Positions 2,677-41,131 of a stretch of DNA of 64,000 bases are shown piece by piece. Position numbers and translations under genes: made by a program. Each line of letters begins with the position of its first letter. Position 1 is the first letter of the stretch. Source of the DNA: Paramoeba atlantica (Eukaryota; Protista; Discosea). The DNA lies in the NCBI GenBank assembly GCA_977017575.1, contig CDRNVI010000098.1, forward strand, positions 1-64,000, in the 5' to 3' direction. Below the pieces are notes generated by a model. The model was given only the letters and a program-made list of their open reading frames with translations. It did not search any database and had not been told where the DNA came from.

Positions 2677-3144
2677 TGTTTTATCATGCACTTATAGTGC
2701 AGAGATTTACTCACCATGTCCTTATCCCGCATACGACGGGTGGATCATGTGAGGTTTCGTCCTCGCCGGAGGTGTGCGGGTGCGGAGAGCTGGCGTCCCA
2801 GGTGCAGAGAGCTCGGTTGTCATGTGCAGGTGCAGAGAGCCGGATGCGTAATCCCCATATTACAGTTTCGGGGGCAATCCGGGTGCAGAGAGCTGCGACA
2901 GAGCCGAGGTGCGGAGAGCTGGGCGACCGCCAGGTGCAGAGAGCCGAGTCTCGTCGGCGGAGGACACGTCTAGTGGTCCTCAAGGGAGGCCACCGTGACG
3001 CATGGCCCTCTCGGAGAGGAAAAAGACAAGTCGAAAAAAGCCGAGAGGGGGAAGCACACTCACCCCAGGGGAGTGAGTCGGGGAGGGGTGAAGGGGTGAA
3101 AGCGCGTCCCCTGCTTCAGCGACAAGAGGGACAGTTCCGACCTT
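2677..3144 (-). mobile_element. Element X copy 1: non-coding structured SINE-like retroelement
   Basis: Near-identical to 33307-33775; interrupts an LRR reading frame; 3' CCCG-TCGTATG-CGGG hairpin shared with the LINE 3' UTR; ends GATAAAACA. Confidence 0.8.
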
Positions 3145-3147
3145 TTT

Positions 3148-3204
3148 AATTCAAATACAGATAATTCAATACAGATAATTTCAAATACAGATAATTCAAA
3201 TACA
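3148..3204. repeat. ~4 tandem copies of a ~15-nt target-derived unit (AATTCAAATACAGAT) at the X1 5' junction
   Basis: Read directly; on the minus strand the unit encodes the LRR segment YLNYL. Confidence 0.8.
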
Positions 3205-3854: not shown

Positions 3855-4954
3855 TACTGTCCTCCCCCACTTAAGCGCAACCAGGTTTTGGCCTAAAATT
3901 GCGCATAAGTAGCCGGGTCAAAAAAAAAGGGGTGAAAAAAAAAATTCGCGTCGCTTCGCGGCGCGTGTTTCAATCATGAGTTACGCGGGGTGCCCTCGGG
4001 GCTGCTTTTGTATACTATCCCCCCTATCCTAGCGTGGCTGGGTTGGGATGAAATGCAACGCTAGGAGGGGGGGCAAAAACTGGGGACGAAGAATTGCTAA
4101 GCCGAAGATGTTGTGGGATTACTGAGGAACATTTTCAAAAAAATCGCTGTTCACGGTACATTTTTACCATAGCTTCGCGGCAAGAGACAGTCTAAAAAGC
4201 AACACTGGCCCCCTGGGTGCCATGGGGGGGGCTGCTTTTAATATACTATCTCCCCTATCCTAGCGTGGCTTTGTCGGGATGAAATGCAACGCTAGGAGGG
4301 GGGGCAAAAACTGGGGCCGAAGAATTGCTAAGTCGAAGATGTTGTGGGATTACTGAGGAACAGTTTCAAAAAAATCGCTGTTCAGGGTAGGTTTTTACCA
4401 TAGCTTCACGGCAAGAGACACAAAAAGCAACACTAAAGCAACAGACACAAAAGCAACAGACACAAAAGCAACTGGCACAAAAGCAACACTAATGGGGGGC
4501 TACCGAGGCAACGCTAGGATAGGGGGGATAGTACTGTACCCCCCCTAGTTATCTGTCAAAACTTTTCGTGGAAAGGTGACAGATAACTAGGGGGGGGTAA
4601 GTTTCGTTTTAAGATTTTTTTTGGAAAGCAATAGCTAAGACAAAAGCGTACAGTACGTGGCAGGAGCGTTCCTCTGATGTACAGTACAGTATAGTATGCA
4701 AAGACTCGCCGTACAGATCGGTGGAGGTCAGTGTGGATCAGAGGAGATCGCTGGAGATCGATGAAGATCATTTTTGAACGTCCAAAGGGACTACCTGCAG
4801 ACTTTCCATTTCAATAGCGGCGAAAATTGGTACAAAAATTCGTACCACGAAAAAAAAACGCGCCGCTTTGCGGCGCTGTTCTTCTGAACGATGCGTCAAT
4901 ATTGCGCTTAAGTGGCCGGGTCAAACGGTTGCGCATAAGTAGGGGGGGACAGTA
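3855..4954. mobile_element. Stack of TA-flanked MITEs
   Basis: Outer TIRs TACTGTCCTCCCCCACTTAAGCGCAACC / GGTTGCGCATAAGTAGGGGGGGACAGTA. Inner element 4013-4533 has TACTATCCCCCCTATCCTAGCG TIRs, an internal ~230-bp tandem duplication and AAAAGCAACAGACAC repeats. A third element starts at 4532. Confidence 0.75.
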
Positions 4955-14660: not shown

Positions 14661-14927
14661 TCTTAATTTCGGTTCCTCTCTAATTACGGCTCCCCCTAAT
14701 TACGGTTTCTCTTTAATTACGGTTCCTCTTTAATTACGGTTCCTCTCTAATTACGGCTCCCCCTAATTACGGTTTCTCTCTAATTACGGTTCCTCTCTAA
14801 TTACGGTTCCTCTCTAATTACGGTTCCTCTCTAATTACGGTTCCTCTCTAATTACGGTTCCTCTCTAATTACGGTTCCTCTCTAATTACGGTTCCTCTCT
14901 AATTACGGTTTCTCTCTAATTACGGTT
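14661..14927. repeat. 17-bp minisatellite (TAATTACGGTTCCTCTC), ~15-16 units
   Basis: Read directly. Confidence 0.9.
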
Positions 14928-21816: not shown

Positions 21817-22338
21817 TCACCGTCTTCCTCCTCCCCTCCCTCCTTTCCCTCCCCCCCTCCCCCCTTGTCGAGCATACCCCCCCTGTCCCCTCCCCGCGGC
21901 GGACTGCGGCATCGCCACACTCACCCCCGCCTCCCCCGCCCCCCCGTGCTGTCCCCCGCGCTCCCCCGCCGCGCGCTGCACGGTGCTGGGGCGGGAGCAC
22001 GGCAGCCCCTCGACCATCCTCCACGTCTCCTCATCCACCACGATCCCGGAGGTGGCGGTCTGGTCCACGATGGAGACCTCGGGGACGTAGTCCATCCGCT
22101 TCTCCCGCTCCTCCTCCTGGAGCCTCAGCGAGATGCCGCGGACGGGCCCGAGCGCGATGCGTTTGATCAGGTGGGTGGTGTACCCGGTGATCTTGTTCCG
22201 CAGGCGCCGGGAGGGGATGGTCCCGATGTCGAGGAGGATGCGCTTGTTGGTGTAGTAGTCCCGGGTGAGTTTGGGGTAGTACCGCTCGACAATGAGCCGG
22301 GAGGCACGTTTGATGGTCTTGGTACGGACTTTGCCCAT
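21817..22338 (-). CDS. RPS17: 40S ribosomal protein S17 (eS17) with RGG-rich tail
   Basis: MGKVRTKTIKRASRLIVERYY...RNKITGYTTHL...GPVRGISLRLQEEEREKRMDYVPEVS. Confidence 0.95.
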   Translation of the reverse strand: MGKVRTKTIKRASRLIVERYYPKLTRDYYTNKRILLDIGTIPSRRLRNKITGYTTHLIKRIALGPVRGISLRLQEEEREKRMDYVPEVSIVDQTATSGIVVDEETWRMVEGLPCSRPSTVQRAAGERGGQHGGAGEAGVSVAMPQSAAGRGQGGYARQGGRGGGKGGRGGGRR

Positions 22339-22504
22339 GGTGGAGGGGAAAAAAGTAGAGTAGGAAAGAAAGTAAAGAATGTGAAAAAAGGTGCAAAAAT
22401 AGAGGAAGAGAACATTATGGAAAATAAAAGAGTAGAGAACAGAAAATACGAAAAATAGAAAATAGAACGAAAATGCTACCCTGTAAGTTCCACTTCCAGA
22501 ACGT

Positions 22505-23113
22505 TTATTGAAGTGGAGCATACTCTATCCATGATGCAGGAATCTTCCAACATGCTTGAGTAGGCATGTGACTTCGAGCTATCTTTCCACGAAGTCCAGG
22601 ATTCCCCGTTATGTCGAATGCAGCAGTAGGCTTCATAAGAGTCGTGTGCTGCAAACACGAAAGATCCACAAATCCGGTGAATCTACAACTGGATACATTT
22701 AACACATCAATGTTAGGCGGAAGATGGGCAAAGTCTGGCTCCCCTGTAAAAAAATTGTGTTGAAGCCACATGCACGTCAAAGGCTGAGGTAAGGTTGTGA
22801 AGTCAACATCGCCACCCAACCGATTCATCAGCAGCCGGGCTTGTTGTATCGTACGCGGTAAATACAGCCAGTGTAATGTCCCATTCAGTTCGCGTTGACG
22901 CCATCTTAAATCAACTATACTCTTAGATTTGTCACATTCCACGCCGTCCCACTCGCAGGCAGCCGTATGCGTATCCCACGAGAGGTGCGGGTTCCTAACA
23001 TCACGGACAAATTTAGCAAGTTCGTATTCTTGCGGCAGAGCAACGCCCTTTACCTTACCTGCACGTGCTGCTGAGGATGCAACGTCGGCTGCCTCATACA
23101 ATAGGAGTGACAT
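22505..23113 (-). CDS. Short LRR protein (subfamily 2)
   Basis: GKVKGVALPQEYEL, SWDTHTAACEWDGVEC cap, LRRs. Confidence 0.8.
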   Translation of the reverse strand: MSLLLYEAADVASSAARAGKVKGVALPQEYELAKFVRDVRNPHLSWDTHTAACEWDGVECDKSKSIVDLRWRQRELNGTLHWLYLPRTIQQARLLMNRLGGDVDFTTLPQPLTCMWLQHNFFTGEPDFAHLPPNIDVLNVSSCRFTGFVDLSCLQHTTLMKPTAAFDITGNPGLRGKIARSHMPTQACWKIPASWIEYAPLQ

Positions 23114-32370: not shown

Positions 32371-33011
32371 TTGATGGAAAGTGCTCTCACTTTAGGTTTC
32401 CACCCAGATCGTACAAGGCCCATTGTATTTCATCGATGTTACCAGAGGAGCTTTGCATTGTTTTTATGCCATTCCACTCACATACAGGATCCTAACATTA
32501 TTCGAAATTCTTCATTATCAATAGCATTCTTACGTATGTATTTTATACGTTCTAACCCTCCTGTCTCCCGGTGGCGTTTAACCCATCGAGAGACAGTTGC
32601 TTCACTGCATTTCGTAAAAGCAGCACTGTCTGCAATCGAACGCCCCTGGTTTTGTATCTCATGGACGCAAAATACACGTGTTTCATAAGTGATTTGTTGC
32701 GTCCAGAAGGTGCGCCTCTGGCGGCGAAGTGTTTTCGGCATAAAATGGGTTAGAAAGAGTTAAATGGTATTTTATTCATAGTTTGATGCGCTAGAATGAC
32801 AAAAAATGATAAAAATCTGATTTTTTGCAGAATTTGTGGTTAAGAATTTCAGTAATTTATTCTCAAGTCGTCATATCTGCTTCAGGGGCGGCAACAATGG
32901 TGCCAGTAGTCTTAAAATTTCGTGATCTGTTGAATGCCGTAGGAATTAGGTCAAAAGCTCGCACGATACAAATTTTAGACCCCCTCCACCTTTTTCGTGA
33001 CCCCCCCTGTA
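32371..33011 (-). mobile_element. Truncated Tc1/IS630-like element (HTH N-terminus); 5' part duplicated at 39537-39880
   Basis: ORF 32478-32741 GRSIADSAAFTKCSEATVSRWVKRHRETG; candidate terminus TA-CAGGGGGGGTC at 33011. Confidence 0.55.
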
Positions 33012-33306
33012 TAGTAGCGATGCCGCATTTTATGCATACCCCCTTACTATTCGCAATAAAAAAAGTTAAGAACACGATCCTACGAATATTGAGACGGATA
33101 GGTTCGCGTAATAAATACGTTTCAAGACTCTTCTTGAATCCACGACGGAGGAATGTTCCACCATGCTCGAGTAGGCATGTGACTCGGGCTATTGTTCCAT
33201 TAAGCCCAGGATTCCCTGTTATGTCGAATCCAGCAACAGGCTTTGCAAGATTCGAGTGCACCAGACAGGAAAGATCCACAAATCCGGTGAATTGACAATT
33301 GGATAG

Positions 33307-33775
33307 TGTTTTATCATGCACTTATAGTGCAGAGATTTACTCACCATGTCCTTATCCCGCATACGACGGGTGGATCATGTGAGGTTTCGTCCTCGCCGGA
33401 GGTGTGCGGGTGCGGAGAGCTGGCGTCCCAGGTGCAGAGAGCTCGGTTGTCATGTGCAGGTGCAGAGAGCCGGATGCGTAATCCCCATATTACAGTTTCG
33501 GGGGCAATCCGGGTGCAGAGAGCTGCGACAGAGCCGAGGTGCGGAGAGCTGGGCGACCGCCAGGTGCAGAGAGCCGAGTCTCGTCGGCGGAGGACACGTC
33601 TAGTGGTCCTCAAGGGAGGCCACCGTGACGCATGGCCCTCTCGGAGAGGAAAAAGACAAGTCGAAAAAAAGCCGAGAGGGGGAAGCACACTCACTCCAGG
33701 GGAGTGAGTCGGGGAGGGGTGAAGTGGTGAAAGCGCGTCCCCTGCTTCAGCGACAAGAGGGACAGTTCCGACCTT
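33307..33775 (-). mobile_element. Element X copy 2
   Basis: Near-identical to 2677-3144; inserted in an LRR segment at GGATA^(CA)TTTAACAC. Confidence 0.8.
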
Positions 33776-33880
33776 AGTGCCGGCCGGCAACGGGCATGAA
33801 AATACAGTAAGAGTATGCCCGTTGCCGGGGAAAGAAAGGATGAACTAAGGAAAAAGTACCAACAAGGTACAGAAACTGTA
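33776..33880 (-). ncRNA. Spliced-leader RNA fragment (last 21 nt of exon plus ~84-nt putative intron)
   Basis: TACAGTTTCTGTACCTTGTTG|GTAC: euglenozoan SL core followed by a GT donor. GTACC-TTGTT-GGTAC stem spans the donor; 14-bp hairpin at 33784-33828. No clear Sm site seen. Confidence 0.65.
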
Positions 33881-34321
33881 GGTCATGATCATACGCTCGT
33901 GGCGCAGAGATACGTCTCTCTGTGTGACGGCCGATACCATCGGCGCATGACCCGCATACGACGGGTGTCACACAGAGAGTGGAGTGCGAGGTAGGAGACG
34001 AGACGCCCATCGGTCATGCTACAGCACGTATAGCCATGGTTCATGCTGCAACACGGTCAAGCCGTGGGTTCATGCTGTCAGATGGTCTATCGTGGATCAT
34101 GATGCATCATGGGGAGGTCCGTTACCGCCGCACTCGCTACAGCATGTAGGGAGAGAGGGGTGCAAGTTCGCATCCCCTATACACGCATACAACGTGTCCT
34201 CCCGCTGTAGCACGCCCAGTGGTCCTCAAGGGAGGCCACCATGGCGCATAGCTCCCGGGAGAAGAAAGCACGAGAAGGAGAGAGCCGGGCTTTAGCACAG
34301 CCGGGCTTTAGAGAGCCGGGC
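33881..34321 (-). mobile_element. Element Y: second structured SINE-like element related to X
   Basis: Shares CCCGCATACGACGGGTG and AGTGGTCCTCAAGGGAGGCCACC with X; otherwise dissimilar. Confidence 0.7.
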
Positions 34322-34381
34322 TTTAACACATCAATGTTGGGAGGTAAATGAGCAAAGTCCAGCTCGCCTGTGAATAAATTG

Positions 34382-37300
34382 TTTTTATTTTTTCATACTT
34401 TCCAGTAGAGTAAGTCGGGGGTATGACCCGCATTCAACGGGATTGCCCCCTTTTTAGAAGACAATGTCAATACGTTTCCTCCTCCGACCATGTCGCCTCA
34501 TTTCGGCGAGCCCAGAGTATGTAACTCCCCCTGAGGGCCATCTGTGTCATGCTTTCTCGACACTTTGTGGCCAAAATATGGTCGCCGTTAAAGATGGCAT
34601 TAATATATTTGCATGACCCATTGGGGAATCCCCGGGCACCTATTTCAAAGGCTATTATGTAGGTGTCCGGGTTTTCCTGTCGCCGTGTATGTAAAAGGAT
34701 GTTGTACTTCTCGGATTTTCTCCGATGAGCGTTCTCCGCATTCTCCTCCCATGGGACTGTGAGTTCGATGAGGAACTCTGTCCCATTGTGAAGTTTAATG
34801 TAACCGTCGGGACGGAGCAGTGTATCGTGTTCCCTCAGCCAAGCTGGTGGGTTACGCTCTCCTGGTAGGTCGAAATATGAAAACTCAGTTCCCTGTGCTT
34901 CCCTAATATGTTTCGCAAATTCGGCAAGGACAAGGTTATGACGGAAAGTATATCGTCCTTGCTGAAGTGAAGTGGTGCAGGCGGAAAGGGTGTGTCTGAC
35001 GGTTTGCACTCGGTCGTTGCAAATAGGGCATTTCATGTTACTGTAGGTGCTGCGGCCCCATTGAACAAGCGCTGCTCGGGAAGGGAGCGGTGTAAGAGGG
35101 AAGGGAGCGGTGTCATGACGGATGCTACAAAGCGGGAGATCTTCGCATTCCGGATCCCATTTATGGCAGAAGCGAATTCTTGGGCCATTTCTGGATCCGT
35201 AGGAAACTGCCACCATAGGGCTGCGATGGGCGCGCGTTGCTGCAAGCGCGTGATTATTTCCTCCTCATGTGCTTCACGAAGCCGTTGACGAGTCATTCGG
35301 GGATCATCCAGATGTTCTGTAATTAAAGTAGCGGGTCGTATTTGACCTCTTTGACGTTTGTGTTGCTCTTCCTGTATGCGTATGCGAAGTGTATGTAGGA
35401 CATTTGGATCTTTGGATTTGTTCATTTGCGTCATAGATTCTCCCGTGCATTCGTACCAAAGTTTTGACAGACTCGTAAGGTTCCAGCCTCGGCAAGAGTA
35501 CAGGACTTCAGAGCTTCCGGCACGCGCCATGTTTATCCATTTCCGTATGTGAGACGTGGCTCGCTTCTGAAGGCGTAGCACGGATCCGAATAACGATGGG
35601 TGAAATTAACGACGGGTGAATAACGAACTGAAAACGGAGACGTGAGAGAACGGCATTTTTGTACATCAAAAGCTTAGCGGGAAGGCTGTGGGCACTTTGT
35701 GTGATGTTCTCCATCCACTGTTTTAGTTTTGAGTCGAGTTTACGAAACAGCTCTTTCAGTTGTTGGGACCCCGGTGCCAAGGTCGTCCCGAGGAAGGTGC
35801 TACCGACATCACATATGTGTGGTATGGTCTCTCCGTAGACTTTTATTTCCGGACGTCTTGTCATATAGCCTGGATGTTCCTCGCCTTTACGGGTGCTCAT
35901 GCACTGTATTCGACTCTTGTTCACGTTAATCTTAAGGCTTAGCTCGCCCAGCACTTTGGTAACTGCATCAAGTGCGTGTTGCATGTCTCCGTCGCTTTCA
36001 GTAAGAATAGTTAAGTCATCAGCAAAAGCCTTAAGGAAGTTGTTCAGACCGTTTGGGAGTTTCATACCGAAGTGCGGGCAGGAGAATCGGACATATCGCA
36101 AAACAATTTCCATCACTATCAGGAAGACAATAGGAGAGAGGGTATCCCCTTGGAGGACACCTTTTCGTATAGAGATAGGTTGCGTAAGACCTTCGTAGCA
36201 CTTAATGCGCATGTGCGCATCCGTTAGGGTATTTTTGATGTAGTGGATGACCTCCGGCGGTACTTGGGCCCATTTCAGAGCGGCATGTATGATATGATGT
36301 GGGACAGACCCGAAGGCATTGCTCAGGTCGAGTTGTGCGAGGCAATATTGAGTTTTGTGTTTCTGGTAATGTCGCAGGAGTGAGCAAAGAGTTTGGGTGT
36401 GTTCCAGTGTACCGTTAATGGAAGGGAGAAAGCCTTTTTGTATTTGAGGGTCAATGACATGGTGTTCAGTCAGGTGTTGAGTCAGTCGATGTGCGATGAT
36501 CGTGTGAAAGGTTTTACCTAGAGCACTAGTAAGGGAGATCGGGCGCCAGTTTTTCGGATTTTCTTTGTTACCTGCTTTATATATCAGCCTGGTTACTGCG
36601 GTTTTCCATGATAGCGGGCACACAGAGAAAGTCATTAGATCGTTGAACACAGATGCAAAGTATTCGTGTGTCGATGGGCAGTTTTTGAGTATTTTGTTAG
36701 TTATCGTGTCGGTTCCTGGAGAACTGGCGTTGCGCTTCATTGTGACAGCTGCAGTGACATCCTCACGGGAGATCGGGTTCCATTGCATTGGCTGGCTAGC
36801 TGTCGGACCTAGTAGATCTGAAGGAGGGAGACGCGAGGATTGCTCATTGGGGTTAAAACTTTCTTGAAAGTATGATTCAATGCTAGATCTGTCACAGCTG
36901 GGAAATGCGGTGTTTTCTACCTCTCTTCCGTTAGGCTTATCAATCGTTTCGGATGCCGCGGTCCACGAGTTTCTAGAGAATCTCTGTGCGGCCCATCTTT
37001 CATCTAGATCTCTGCGTTGCATTGTAGCTTCCTCCTCCCTCAGCTTGATCGCTTTGCGACATTCCTTAATTTGTGCCCGCGTTCTCTCGCGTTCCGCCCG
37101 GTTCCTCGTGTAACGTAGCGATCGTTTCATCGTTTCTAAATGGTGTTTGAGATCGGTTACGGTTCTTTCCGCCGCGAGTGGTCGGTATCTACGTCGTGCA
37201 TGTCCGGTACTGGTCCTTATCAGGAAACCTTTCGTCGGATTTGCTTCTATGGCGACTTCATGTGCTGAGACTGCTAATGCGGCACTGAGTAATTCCGCGT

Positions 37301-39504
37301 TTCGTACAGCTGCCTCTTTATCCGGTGTAGGGGTAAGTAGTTGAATGCATCTCTCTTTCGCTCTCGATTCGACAATCCGCCACTGTACCTCATTTAGTCG
37401 TATCGTAACCTTACCTCCGCTTATGGCTTCGTGCTTCTGGAGAAGTTGCGTTTGCAATCTGGTTCGAGAGTAGGCTTCTTGCTCGGGGGAGGCAGGGTAC
37501 TCTGCAGCCGGAGGAGGGCTGTTCGGGTGCTGGATGGCTGCTGCATCGGTCTCTGAGTCTTCGGTGTCTCTTTGCGTAGTGTTCCTCCGGGCATACACTG
37601 GTCCGTATACTTTGCAGCACTTGTGGGCACATTCCACTTTGTTTCGACATGTGTGCTGACACGGGTGCAAACTAAGCTTCGTAGGTGCCCTACTGATAGT
37701 TTGGATGCGGTGAGGGGATGCTTCTCGGCGCGGGTTCTTTTCATAGTGTACGTCTGAGGGATCTTCCTCCCGCTTATGTAGTGTAATATGCAGATGTTGA
37801 AGGAGGGGCACATCCCGTCCGGCAAGAACCTTGAGGATTGCGCGGCCGAGTGCTCCCGCGGAGCTGTATGACTCACCAAGTTTGAAGGTATCATCTTTGT
37901 AGAGGGAAGTCCAGCTGGCGTGCCGTCGGTGTTCTTGCGCGTGCGCTTGTTTTACAACCCTTATGTAGTCACATCCCTGGTGATCCATGAGCTCGTCCAG
38001 TGAGGCTGGCTGAACAATTAGGTCGTGGGAGCTTCCGTTCCCTGAAAGCATTTTACTGAGTGCCGCTTGCGCTGCTTGATGAGAAGCAATTCTGGCCTTG
38101 ACTAGAGGGGATTCGCTGGCGGCCCGGACGTCTGGAAAATACCGCCAGGTGAGATCTGTGAGTGTTCTTATTTTTAAGGGGCGCGCCCGGCTTTGGACAA
38201 AATGAAGATTTTGTTTGTGTTGAAGCGATGCACTCAGTCCAGTAGGTGTTGTGGCGGCGTCATCTAGGTTTCCCGAGTGTTGGTTGTTGAACACCCAGGT
38301 GGGAACTTCGTCCGTGCTTTCTTCCAGTAGGATGTGATGGTCTACGGAGACGCTAGGTACCGGTAGTGGGGAAGGGAGGCGAGCGAGCACCTCGGGATAC
38401 AGAGATTCTGTATTTTGGTTTTCGTATCCAGGGATCTCGTCGTTTTTAGTGGCACTGCATGAGGTAGCTATCGAGGCGTCGTTTTTGCTGTCGCAGTTTG
38501 GTTGCTCGGGAGCGCGATTTTCAAGGTGCAATAGTGGATTCGTACAATTGGGTTCATCATTCTCTGCTTGTACATTATGCGCGCTTGGAGCTTTGGGGGT
38601 AAGGAAGTCTATGTACCAGAGAAAGATGCGTAGTGGTAATTTTACAAGTTCCAAAATGATGGTCGATGTTGATGTCTTCTTGGTCTTCGCAAGTAGCAAC
38701 CAAAGTTCATCGTATTTCCGTGAGACAGGCGTTTTGAAGTTGGAGAGGGTTAGATAGATCTGGTTGATTGCCACTGGAACTAGAGGTATGCTGCTTCGCA
38801 AAAGACTGAGCGCATACCATGTGAGTGCGAATATTAAGTGGACAAGTGTGCAGAATAGTTTCATGAGGTACTTCACGTTATGAAATAGTATTGCAACCTT
38901 GAGGGTCTGCTCCGTGTAGGGGTTGCTCGTTTGATCTGGAGTAGTGTGTACTAAGTGGCGTTTGCAGCAGGCATGCTTGCATGTGTTTTTGTTTAGACAT
39001 TTATGTTTACATGGCTTCGTTTGAGGTGGTTCTGTAGAGTTTCAGCAATATGCAGGTTGGGTTACGAAGTAGGGTATTTTCATGAATATTGTCGCCAGTA
39101 ATGCTTCGATGATGCAATATACTCTCCCGAAGAATCTCGGTGGGGTGCTTATATTCGTCAAGTTCGGTGCTGTAGGAATATCGATTTTGTTTATGCGAGG
39201 CTGTTGCCTCTTACAACACGGGTGAAGACATGTTCGTTTGTTGAGGCACCTGTGTTTACATGGTGTTCCGTGGGTCATGGGGGTTTGCGGTACCATATTT
39301 GCAGTCACTAGTTCGGTTGGCGTGACGCATGATGGTGGTTCGGAGGGGGCACCATTCTCGTCGACGGGACGTCCATGGTCTAAGAGATCAACGGTTGACA
39401 TATCAACGCCGCGTGGTCCTCCCGTAAGGTCCTGCGGCGCATCAGCATGAGTGCAATGTGAAGGGGGTCGCGTCATTGTAACGATAAAGATAAGAGAAAA
39501 AAAA
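34382..39504 (-). mobile_element. Full-length RLE-type non-LTR retrotransposon (HERO-like), copy 2
   Basis: ATG at 39476; in-frame TGA at 39042-39044; Cys/His fingers; RT (ORF 35508-38876); frameshifts; RLE (34467-35216); 3' tail identical to copy 1. Confidence 0.92.
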
Positions 39505-39536
39505 CAACAAGGTACAGAAACTGTATCTTTATCGTT
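39505..39536 (-). other. SL exon at the 5' end of LINE copy 2
   Basis: AACGATAAAGATACAGTTTCTGTACCTTGTTG; last 21 nt identical to 33860-33880; not followed by GT. Confidence 0.8.
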
Positions 39537-40237
39537 CAAATTACACGTGTTTCATAAGTGATTTGTTGCGTCCAGAAGGTGCGCCTCTGGCGGCGAAGTG
39601 TTTTCGGCATAAAATGGGTTAGAAAGAGTTAAATGGTATTTTATTCATAGTTTGATGCGCTAAAATGACAAAAAATGATAAAAATCTGATTTTTTGCAGA
39701 ATTTGTGGTTAAGAATTTCAGTAATTTATTCTCAAGTCGTCATATCAGCTTCAGGGGCGGCAACAATGGTGCCAGTAGTCTTAAAATTTCGAGATCTGTT
39801 GAATGCCGTAGGAATTAGGTCAAAAGCTCGCACGATACAAATTTTAGACCCCCTCCACCTTTTTCGTGACCCCCCCTGTATAGTAGCGATGCCGCATTTT
39901 ATGCATACCCCCCTACTATTCGCAATAAAAAAAGTTAAGAACACGATCCTACGAATATTGAGACGCATAGGTTCGCGTAATAAATACGTTTCAAGACTCT
40001 TCTTGAATCCACGACGGAGGAATGTTCCACCATGCTCGAGTAGGCATGTGACTGCGGGCTATTGTTCCATTAAGCCCAGGATTCCCTGTTATGTCGAATC
40101 CAGCAACAGGCTTTGCAAGATTCGAGTGCACCAGACAGGAAAGATCCACAAATCCGGTGAATTGACAATTGGATACATTTAACACATCAATGTTGGGAGG
40201 TAAATGGGCAAAGTCCAGCTCTCCTGTGAATAAATTG
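39537..40237. repeat. Right copy of the ~700-bp direct repeat
   Basis: See 32668-34381. Confidence 0.85.
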
Positions 40238-40602: not shown

Positions 40603-41009
40603 AATATTCTCCGGAATGAACTCGGTTGATTAAAGCTACATGTATGTAGTTCTAGAAATAAAGAATTTGCAATTGTAGTTTTATCAATTGTTTTCCATAC
40701 ATAATAAAGCATATTCCAGGATAGTATACCTTGTAGGTATATTAAATGGGTACGGTATACTAAATGTTGTCTAAAAAGCCAAAAAAACGCGGCGCTTCGT
40801 GGCGCATTCCTTATCTGTAGTTGCTAGAAAAATGGTGGATTGGCCTTCAAATAAGATTTCTTGGGTTGCGCTTGCTAGAAAAGTTGCTCTGTCGCTTCTA
40901 AAAATGGGACGTCTACCGCTTATGTTGTGTTGAAGGGGGTAGGTTTGCAAAATGGCCTTGGGTAGTAGGTCCCGAAATTATTAATGATCTTTTTGCGATT
41001 TTTCTTTTT

Positions 41010-41108
41010 TAGGCTCTTCGTTAAACGCGGAGGTAGTTTTCAACGCGAAGCGCGACGCATGAGTGACTTCTAAGTTGAAAACAACTACCGCGTTTAACGA
41101 AGAGGCTA
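41010..41108. mobile_element. ~100-bp palindromic MITE, copy 2
   Basis: Matches 513-611. Confidence 0.8.
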
Positions 41109-41131
41109 ATAAAGAAAAATTGTCATTAATA

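Follow-up and report, generated by a model that had tools for sequence, protein, structure and literature searches.

Element X is, with high confidence, a young non-autonomous retroposon which is about 580 nt long and non-coding. The middle part of its RNA is predicted with good confidence to fold into a 207-nt rod with three two-fold-symmetric internal loops of 10x10 nt, formed by motifs 1/6, 2/5 and 3/4. All six are copies of one motif, and this motif resembles one strand of the 3' signal of LINEs. By analogy with R2, we favour at a probability of roughly 0.4 the reading that the rod loops would be extra docking sites which raise the avidity of X RNA for the LINE protein.

When the window (the whole stretch of DNA analysed, 64,000 nt) was searched for GGTGCRGAGAGC, it was found at 2779, 2801, 2829, 2882, 2908 and 2933 and again at 33409, 33431, 33459, 33512, 33538 and 33563. 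Only 0.26 matches are expected, and a count of 12 was reached in none of 100 shuffles. No match was observed elsewhere in the window, even when one mismatch was allowed. The earlier note had reported six motifs and the same pattern in a second copy, and its six positions and the span of the second copy are exact. On the RNA strand the motif reads G-CUCUCYGCAC-C, and its outer G and C close the neighbouring helices. The motifs, all on the minus strand, are M1 (2933-2944; copy 2, 33563-33574), which faces M6 (2779-2790; 33409-33420) in loop 1, M2 (2908-2919; 33538-33549), which faces M5 (2801-2812; 33431-33442) in loop 2, and M3 (2882-2893; 33512-33523), which faces M4 (2829-2840; 33459-33470) in loop 3. 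The dinucleotide AG stands directly before four of the six motifs (2779-2944, minus strand), and thus potential acceptor sites for trans-splicing may be masked by the rod as well.

The window contains two copies of X. Copy 2 (33307-33880, minus strand) is near full-length and consists of a spliced-leader head, a pyrimidine-rich hairpin head, a LINE-like 5' module, the rod and a two-hairpin tail. Copy 1 (2677-3144, minus strand) is 99.4 % identical to 33307-33775 of copy 2 over 469 nt and has a 15-nt tandem repeat (3147-3204) before it on the RNA strand; a short tandem repeat of this kind (15-16 nt) also lies at the truncated 5' junction of element Y (34279-34330). Beyond the first-noted end of copy 2, the element continues for about 105 nt up to the spliced-leader head (33776-33880), and the same segment was found in at least six other copies. 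As this segment and the leader head the full-length copies, X is about 580 nt long and copy 1 is 5'-truncated. The boundaries 2677-3144, previously taken for the whole element, therefore miss about 105 nt and the spliced-leader head. The description as a SINE-like RNA of about 470 nt holds for its kind (short, dispersed and non-coding) and fails for its length, which is about 580 nt on the minus strand.

When a spurious ORF within X was used as bait, eleven loci were collected from the ENA assembly ERZ24900291 of the same organism (cited by labels such as L074). In these loci, copies or fragments of X number at least 14; their identity to X is 86-99 % and their flanks are unrelated, and more near-identical copies are implied beyond these and the two in the window. 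Four features indicate that X moves via RNA. All copies have the same 3' end, their 5' truncation varies, the full-length copies are headed by 26-32 nt of leader and then this 105-nt segment, and empty sites exist. An LRR gene is split by the block 33307-34321. Its paralogues are empty, as is the site at 40175-40178, and 1-2 nt were lost on insertion into the LRR gene. A direct LRR duplication of 639 bp (32668-33305 and 39537-40175, 98.9 % identical) flanks the block of X, Y and LINE. Contigs of three runs cover X, and their coverage of the head is several-fold deeper than that of the motif region, which is consistent with a head common to other families. None of the runs with X is recorded as RNA, and the contigs of the single RNA-like run contained none on X.

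The 3' 21 nt of the spliced-leader exon head copy 2 (33860-33880, minus strand; 26-32 nt in other copies), and the same leader heads the LINE of the window (39505-39536, minus strand), where it is of kinetoplastid type by its consensus. Because of the orientation of the leader and of the LINE-tail hairpin, the RNA corresponds to the minus strand and the plus strand was rejected; counts of G-U wobbles are about equal for both strands and leave the choice undecided. A head segment (33762-33769, minus strand; 3132-3139 in copy 1) is complementary to X's own leader and is predicted to sequester it. Decayed leader relics were also observed before sequence unlike X (L068 3760-3779, L069 3929-3948, L075 11511-11531 and L076 1185-1205).

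The host is a kinetoplastid as judged from sequence: the nearest relative of the ribosomal protein S17 of the window is the trypanosomatid S17, the window genes have no introns, a spliced leader of kinetoplastid type occurs in the window, and a protein related to that of the window LINE was found in the prokinetoplastid transcriptome PhF-6 (PMC7859406). The S17 gene (21817-22521, minus strand) encodes a long glycine/arginine-rich (RGG) C-terminal extension.

X works like a SINE, yet it departs from classical SINEs in two respects. Its head is the spliced leader and not a tRNA, 7SL or 5S head with an internal Pol III promoter, and a tRNA search of X with ARAGORN found none. In addition, no flank match above chance that would indicate a target-site duplication was found in eight insertions. 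A protein-coding origin was rejected as the ORFs called in X carry indels and frameshifts that vary among copies, contain no Pfam domain over the element and have no match outside X's own assembly; they served only as bait. X is not a simple tandem repeat (TRF finds 2.5 units only), and a DNA transposon, MITE or Helitron was rejected since terminal inverted repeats are absent, the 3' end is fixed and the 5' end is truncated. A hammerhead or HDV-like ribozyme was considered because a GGACGAAAC stretch closes the outer stem; however, the CUGANGA core is missing and Rfam returned nothing. The earlier note recognised no known family, and the Rfam covariance models agree, with none reaching the gathering score on X and a best E-value of 1.5 in a relaxed search. 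When metagenomes were scanned with a two-motif pattern, all 67 matches were ordinary tandem repeats that resemble X in the motif alone. Within the limits of the literature collection searched, no description of X's leader sequence or architecture was found.

The predicted rod spans 33389-33595 in copy 2 (minus strand), as judged from folding and the eleven-copy alignment, and 2759-2965 in copy 1 (minus strand), which has the same fold. When the ten-base cores were held unpaired, the real spacers gave -67.3 kcal/mol and the shuffled spacers -40.7 ± 4.1 kcal/mol (z = -6.5; 0 of 300 shuffles), in keeping with the claim that the spacers are not random. Unconstrained RNAalifold on eleven aligned copies also returned the rod. 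Of the features proposed before, the outer stem, the helices M2-M5 and M3-M4 and the unpaired state of the cores are confirmed. In the case of the two local CTGG/CCAG hairpins, the spacers concerned pair with each other instead: S1 (the M1-M2 spacer; 2920-2932, minus strand) pairs over long range with S5 (the M5-M6 spacer; 2791-2800) through 11 bp in the constrained fold. Four different arm pairs (UGG/CCA, UCG/CGA, CGG/CCG and UGC/GCA) nest so that core faces core in the 10x10 loops. This arm pairing is the best of 720 assignments and was reached by 0 of 3000 null sets.

The collected copies were checked for covariation, and two compensatory changes were observed, both in the S1-S5 helix, which is specific to the rod. 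At one pair, five copies have C-G and four related copies G-C, and the adjacent pair changes from G-C to A-U in L074. Both halves of the latter change (33560 C>T and 33423 G>A) are present in contigs of another sample. This diagnostic helix shows two independent compensatory events only, and L068 and L073a are mismatched there. Folded freely, a single sequence does not stand out (z = -0.8 for the core), and in the window copy the ensemble probability of the outer rod helix is only 0.28. A four-way junction with two local hairpins and one symmetric loop, as first proposed, is very improbable: although 4 bp are possible in each local hairpin of the window copies and one hairpin reaches an ensemble probability of about 0.2, the other reaches 0.01, the rod is more stable in all ten copies tested (by 1.3-10.9 kcal/mol), and both compensatory changes keep the long-range pairs while they break or miss local pairs or land in loops of the junction.

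The LINE of the window encodes a reverse transcriptase (RT) and a restriction-like endonuclease (RLE), is headed by the spliced leader (34375-39536, minus strand) and belongs to the likely helper group. The first tail hairpin of X (2726-2740, minus strand; copy 2, 33356-33370) is common to the 3' UTR of this LINE and to element Y. The terminal hinge and hairpin (2684-2706, minus strand; copy 2, 33314-33336) are those of the L074 LINE tail save one G-U wobble; the protein of the L074 LINE, which is also of RLE type, is 45-54 % identical to that of the window LINE, whose own tail has a variant stem. X thus shares its 3' end with autonomous LINEs. The dependence on a LINE that had been suggested is borne out by these common hairpins, and copying in trans would be its probable form. 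A partial seventh motif had also been reported near the 3' end, and we located it at 2697-2705, where it makes up the hinge and the 5' stem strand of the terminal hairpin. The CUCUCYGCAC core agrees with this hinge and 5' stem strand, in X and in the L074 LINE, at nine of ten bases (chance about 1e-4). This agreement lends indirect support to the earlier idea that the RNA may recruit the LINE protein. When the LINE tails of L071, L074, L079 and L080 were compared with those of X, Y and Z, UCUCUG before the stem and AUGA after it were found to be fixed and the stem to covary. A fixed UCUCUG next to a covarying stem is as expected of a sequence that is read out.

On its 5' side the rod is adjoined by a hairpin module common to X, Y and Z (33603-33624, minus strand; 2973-2994 in copy 1), 16 of 17 bases of which correspond to the LINE ORF start in L079. 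Derivation of the SINE head from a LINE 5' UTR was rejected for both full-length LINEs seen. A partner of the CRE clade (SLACS/CZAR/CRE1) was rejected as well, since the copies lie in LRR genes and dispersed sites and the leader is a head, not a split target. The N-terminal part of the window LINE protein (35508-38876, minus strand) has CxHxCxxKxxCxHxCCK in place of the usual C2H2 finger, and its C-terminal part is spread over several frames in this copy of the LINE. In L074 (1138-2930, plus strand) a SINE head of leader and first hairpin is fused directly to the 3' 1.7 kb of a LINE. This is likely a template-switch chimera and suggests that the enzyme handles SINE and LINE RNAs together. The leader start is shortly reiterated at the L074 locus.

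In the docking reading, X would be made as a spliced-leader-capped, trans-spliced RNA and copied in trans by an R2-like (RT and RLE) LINE protein that binds the tail, where the two-hairpin 3' signal is evident from the sequence. The rod sits just upstream of this LINE-type signal, and its loop strands would be copies of the hinge and the first stem strand. In vertebrates, the R2 protein recognises the individual bases of a single-stranded hinge which lies 5' of the 3' stem (bioRxiv 10.1101/2024.11.11.623112). By analogy, each loop would present two copies of hinge and stem start, and as UGCA is self-complementary, the facing copies could rebuild the first four pairs of the stem, minus the terminal UGA of the true signal. 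The UGCA:UGCA register is predicted in loop 3, and overall it gives no gain in stability over the open loops (-66.0 against -67.3). Pairing of the internal motifs with the terminal 3' strand, considered as an alternative, gave only -3 to -7 kcal/mol and cannot outcompete the local hairpin. Up to six non-priming docking sites would thereby capture the LINE protein and then hand it over to the real 3' end, and the avidity gained would counter the preference of the LINE protein for its own mRNA.

What speaks most against an essential role of the motif is the spread of the sister families Y and Z, whose head is the same as that of X, whose tail is related and whose repeats are different; the X motif is thus not needed for mobility. 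In addition, the U of UGCA is invariant in the terminal hairpins, yet it toggles between U and C at three to four of the six internal positions (the Y position of the motif; p = 0.002 against the other motif columns). To our knowledge, how non-autonomous elements overcome the own-mRNA preference of a LINE protein is known in outline only for Alu. The SRP9/14 domain of Alu is an internal module that is thought to help the SINE to reach the LINE protein, and it borrows the host 7SL fold; X, in contrast, contains no host RNA that Rfam recognises besides the leader. A helper signal multiplied in a regular rod would, if true, be a direct and testable answer to the own-mRNA preference. The motif would then also point at the bases read by an R2-like enzyme and be relevant to R2-based tools for RNA-templated gene insertion.

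The loops may alternatively bind a host protein, most plausibly a PTB-like one (DRBD3/DRBD4, CUCUCU) or else an RRM protein that recognises UGCAC; the bound protein would make the non-coding RNA more stable or protect it against trans-splicing and polyadenylation at internal sites. We consider this possible and somewhat unlikely. The U/C toggle retains a pyrimidine, and two-fold-symmetric loops that end in UGCAC recall the U1A polyadenylation-inhibition element. This element and the HIV Rev response element are rod-shaped RNAs, in whose repeated or two-fold-symmetric internal loops one protein binds in multiple copies. Both act in cis within mRNAs and are not parts of mobile elements, and their likeness to X is a resemblance only. 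The U1A consensus is AUUGCAC in a 7x1 loop, whereas X has CUCUCYGCAC in 10x10 loops and its motif does not contain the A that starts the U1A site. Moreover, GCAC is conserved as much as the CU tract, and a host protein would leave the identity of the motif with the LINE 3' signal strand unexplained. The preferred sites of PTB are UCUU and CUCUCU, and RRM3/4 of this protein contact two tracts that lie apart (PMC3856098). In trypanosomes, tethered DRBD3 and DRBD4 repress trans-splicing and DRBD3 can stabilise mRNA; however, the reported DRBD3 motif UUCCCCUCU differs from the X motif (PMC9639853), and the trypanosome U1 snRNA has no stem-loop II (PMC4041458).

The motif copies could also be by-products of reverse transcription. 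RT re-priming or jumping at copies of the terminal signal would multiply and homogenise the motif, and selection would act on a compact, interrupted rod only, for stability or for avoidance of long double-stranded RNA, and not on the loop sequence. Jumps at the motif were indeed observed: one 26-nt unit is lost in L073b, a motif fragment is inserted in L072, the terminal signal is triplicated in L077, and contigs show motif-to-motif skips. Homogenisation through such jumps could mimic part of the motif conservation, for which the p-value is weak (shared variants in 1 of 54 non-Y motif columns and in 38 of 358 flank columns, p = 0.04). The spacers S1 and S5 resemble each other and are both nearly palindromic, hence duplication alone would permit their cross-pairing, and the one to four internal repeats of EhSINE1 have been attributed to slippage (PMC2996970). 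On the other hand, the nesting of four arm pairs with core facing core is made by neither tandem nor fold-back duplication. Subfamily representatives differ from each other by 3-8 % in the rod, 8-16 % in the head and 9-20 % in the tail, and the six-motif layout persists among subfamilies whose heads are 8-16 % apart. We regard a by-product origin as doubtful.

Another reading, which we consider unlikely, is that the rod would be a multivalent decoy arm, in which six mimics of the LINE signal and an anti-leader loop pull the reverse transcriptase off leader-bearing LINE mRNA. If this were true, the other modules that the sister families carry in the same slot would be a natural series of evolved RNA scaffolds.

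The rod might instead mainly present its anti-leader loop, docking X via the leader of other RNAs including LINE mRNA; this would be compatible with the docking sites proposed above, and as the main role of the rod we give it little credence. The first 9 nt of the 13-nt apical loop (2857-2869, minus strand; copy 2, 33487-33499) are perfectly complementary to the leader (-11.5 kcal/mol; 2 of 2000 shuffles), the loop is predicted to be unpaired, X's own leader is predicted to be paired, and the 13 columns of the loop contain no shared variant. However, this conservation is not significant (p = 0.38), the segment may merely copy the anti-leader stretch of the head, and the leader is present on all mRNAs and hence confers no specificity for LINE mRNA.

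Returning to the docking reading and to described elements, EhSINE1 of Entamoeba histolytica is the nearest described case to X. EhSINE1, with EhLINE1 as its partner, is likewise non-autonomous, 500-600 nt long, shares only a short 3' end with the LINE and has internal repeats of variable number; these are 26-27-nt tandem units for which no structure is reported there (PMC2996970). In contrast, the repeats of X are nested in symmetric rod loops and copy a LINE signal strand, and X has a spliced-leader head. RIME, NARTc and SIDER are also short non-autonomous kinetoplastid retroposons and derive from ingi/L1Tc (apurinic-endonuclease type) and share the 5' Pr77 signature (PMC12278014, PMC2996970). 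X differs from these ingi-clade elements as it pairs with RLE-type LINEs, and through its 3' end. The available portion of a mobilome survey names short versions for INGI only (PMC12278014). The R2 3' UTR element resembles the X tail in its single-stranded hinge just 5' of the terminal stem; it has one such site and a pseudoknot, and multiplied internal copies are not described there (bioRxiv 10.1101/2024.11.11.623112). No description of nested symmetric loops built from a LINE signal was found within the limits of the literature collection searched. Irrespective of function, the 10x10 two-fold-symmetric loop is an RNA module not in Rfam and is small enough for structure work.

Element Y (33881-34321 of the window, minus strand) has the same hairpin module, a related two-hairpin tail and a different middle repeat containing GCAUGA, which is similar to the terminal signal in its 3' strand. 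More distant relatives of Y were found in L068 (14847-15340), L073 (10785-11256) and L079 (13530-13700). A three-way junction for Y was suggested by eye and dropped, as RNAalifold does not recover it. Element Z (L071 10178-10745, minus strand; L079 11422-12000, plus strand) has a head of X type and contains twice a 67-nt multibranch module, in which two hairpins have loops that look able to pair mutually. Z has no match in Rfam, and its module is possibly a new structured RNA or ribozyme. A further leader-headed element (L076 3700-4271, minus strand, and a duplicate) contains two bulged hairpins of about 65 nt with an A-rich loop in a long self-complementary frame. In L073 (10487-11267, minus strand) a mosaic element was found that is Y in its head and middle and X in its rod and tail, with the common hairpin module as the point of fusion, which indicates that modules are swapped between families. 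Head-to-tail trains, in which leader-headed elements stand directly behind a LINE or SINE tail, were observed in L079 (11400-11450, plus strand) and L073 (10470-10495), and likewise for Y and X in the window. The window also contains tandem arrays at 1-80, 3998-4434 and 14664-14927, with units of 11, 231 and 17 nt, respectively, and palindromic MITE-like elements at 480-611, 4539-4627 and 40977-41120.
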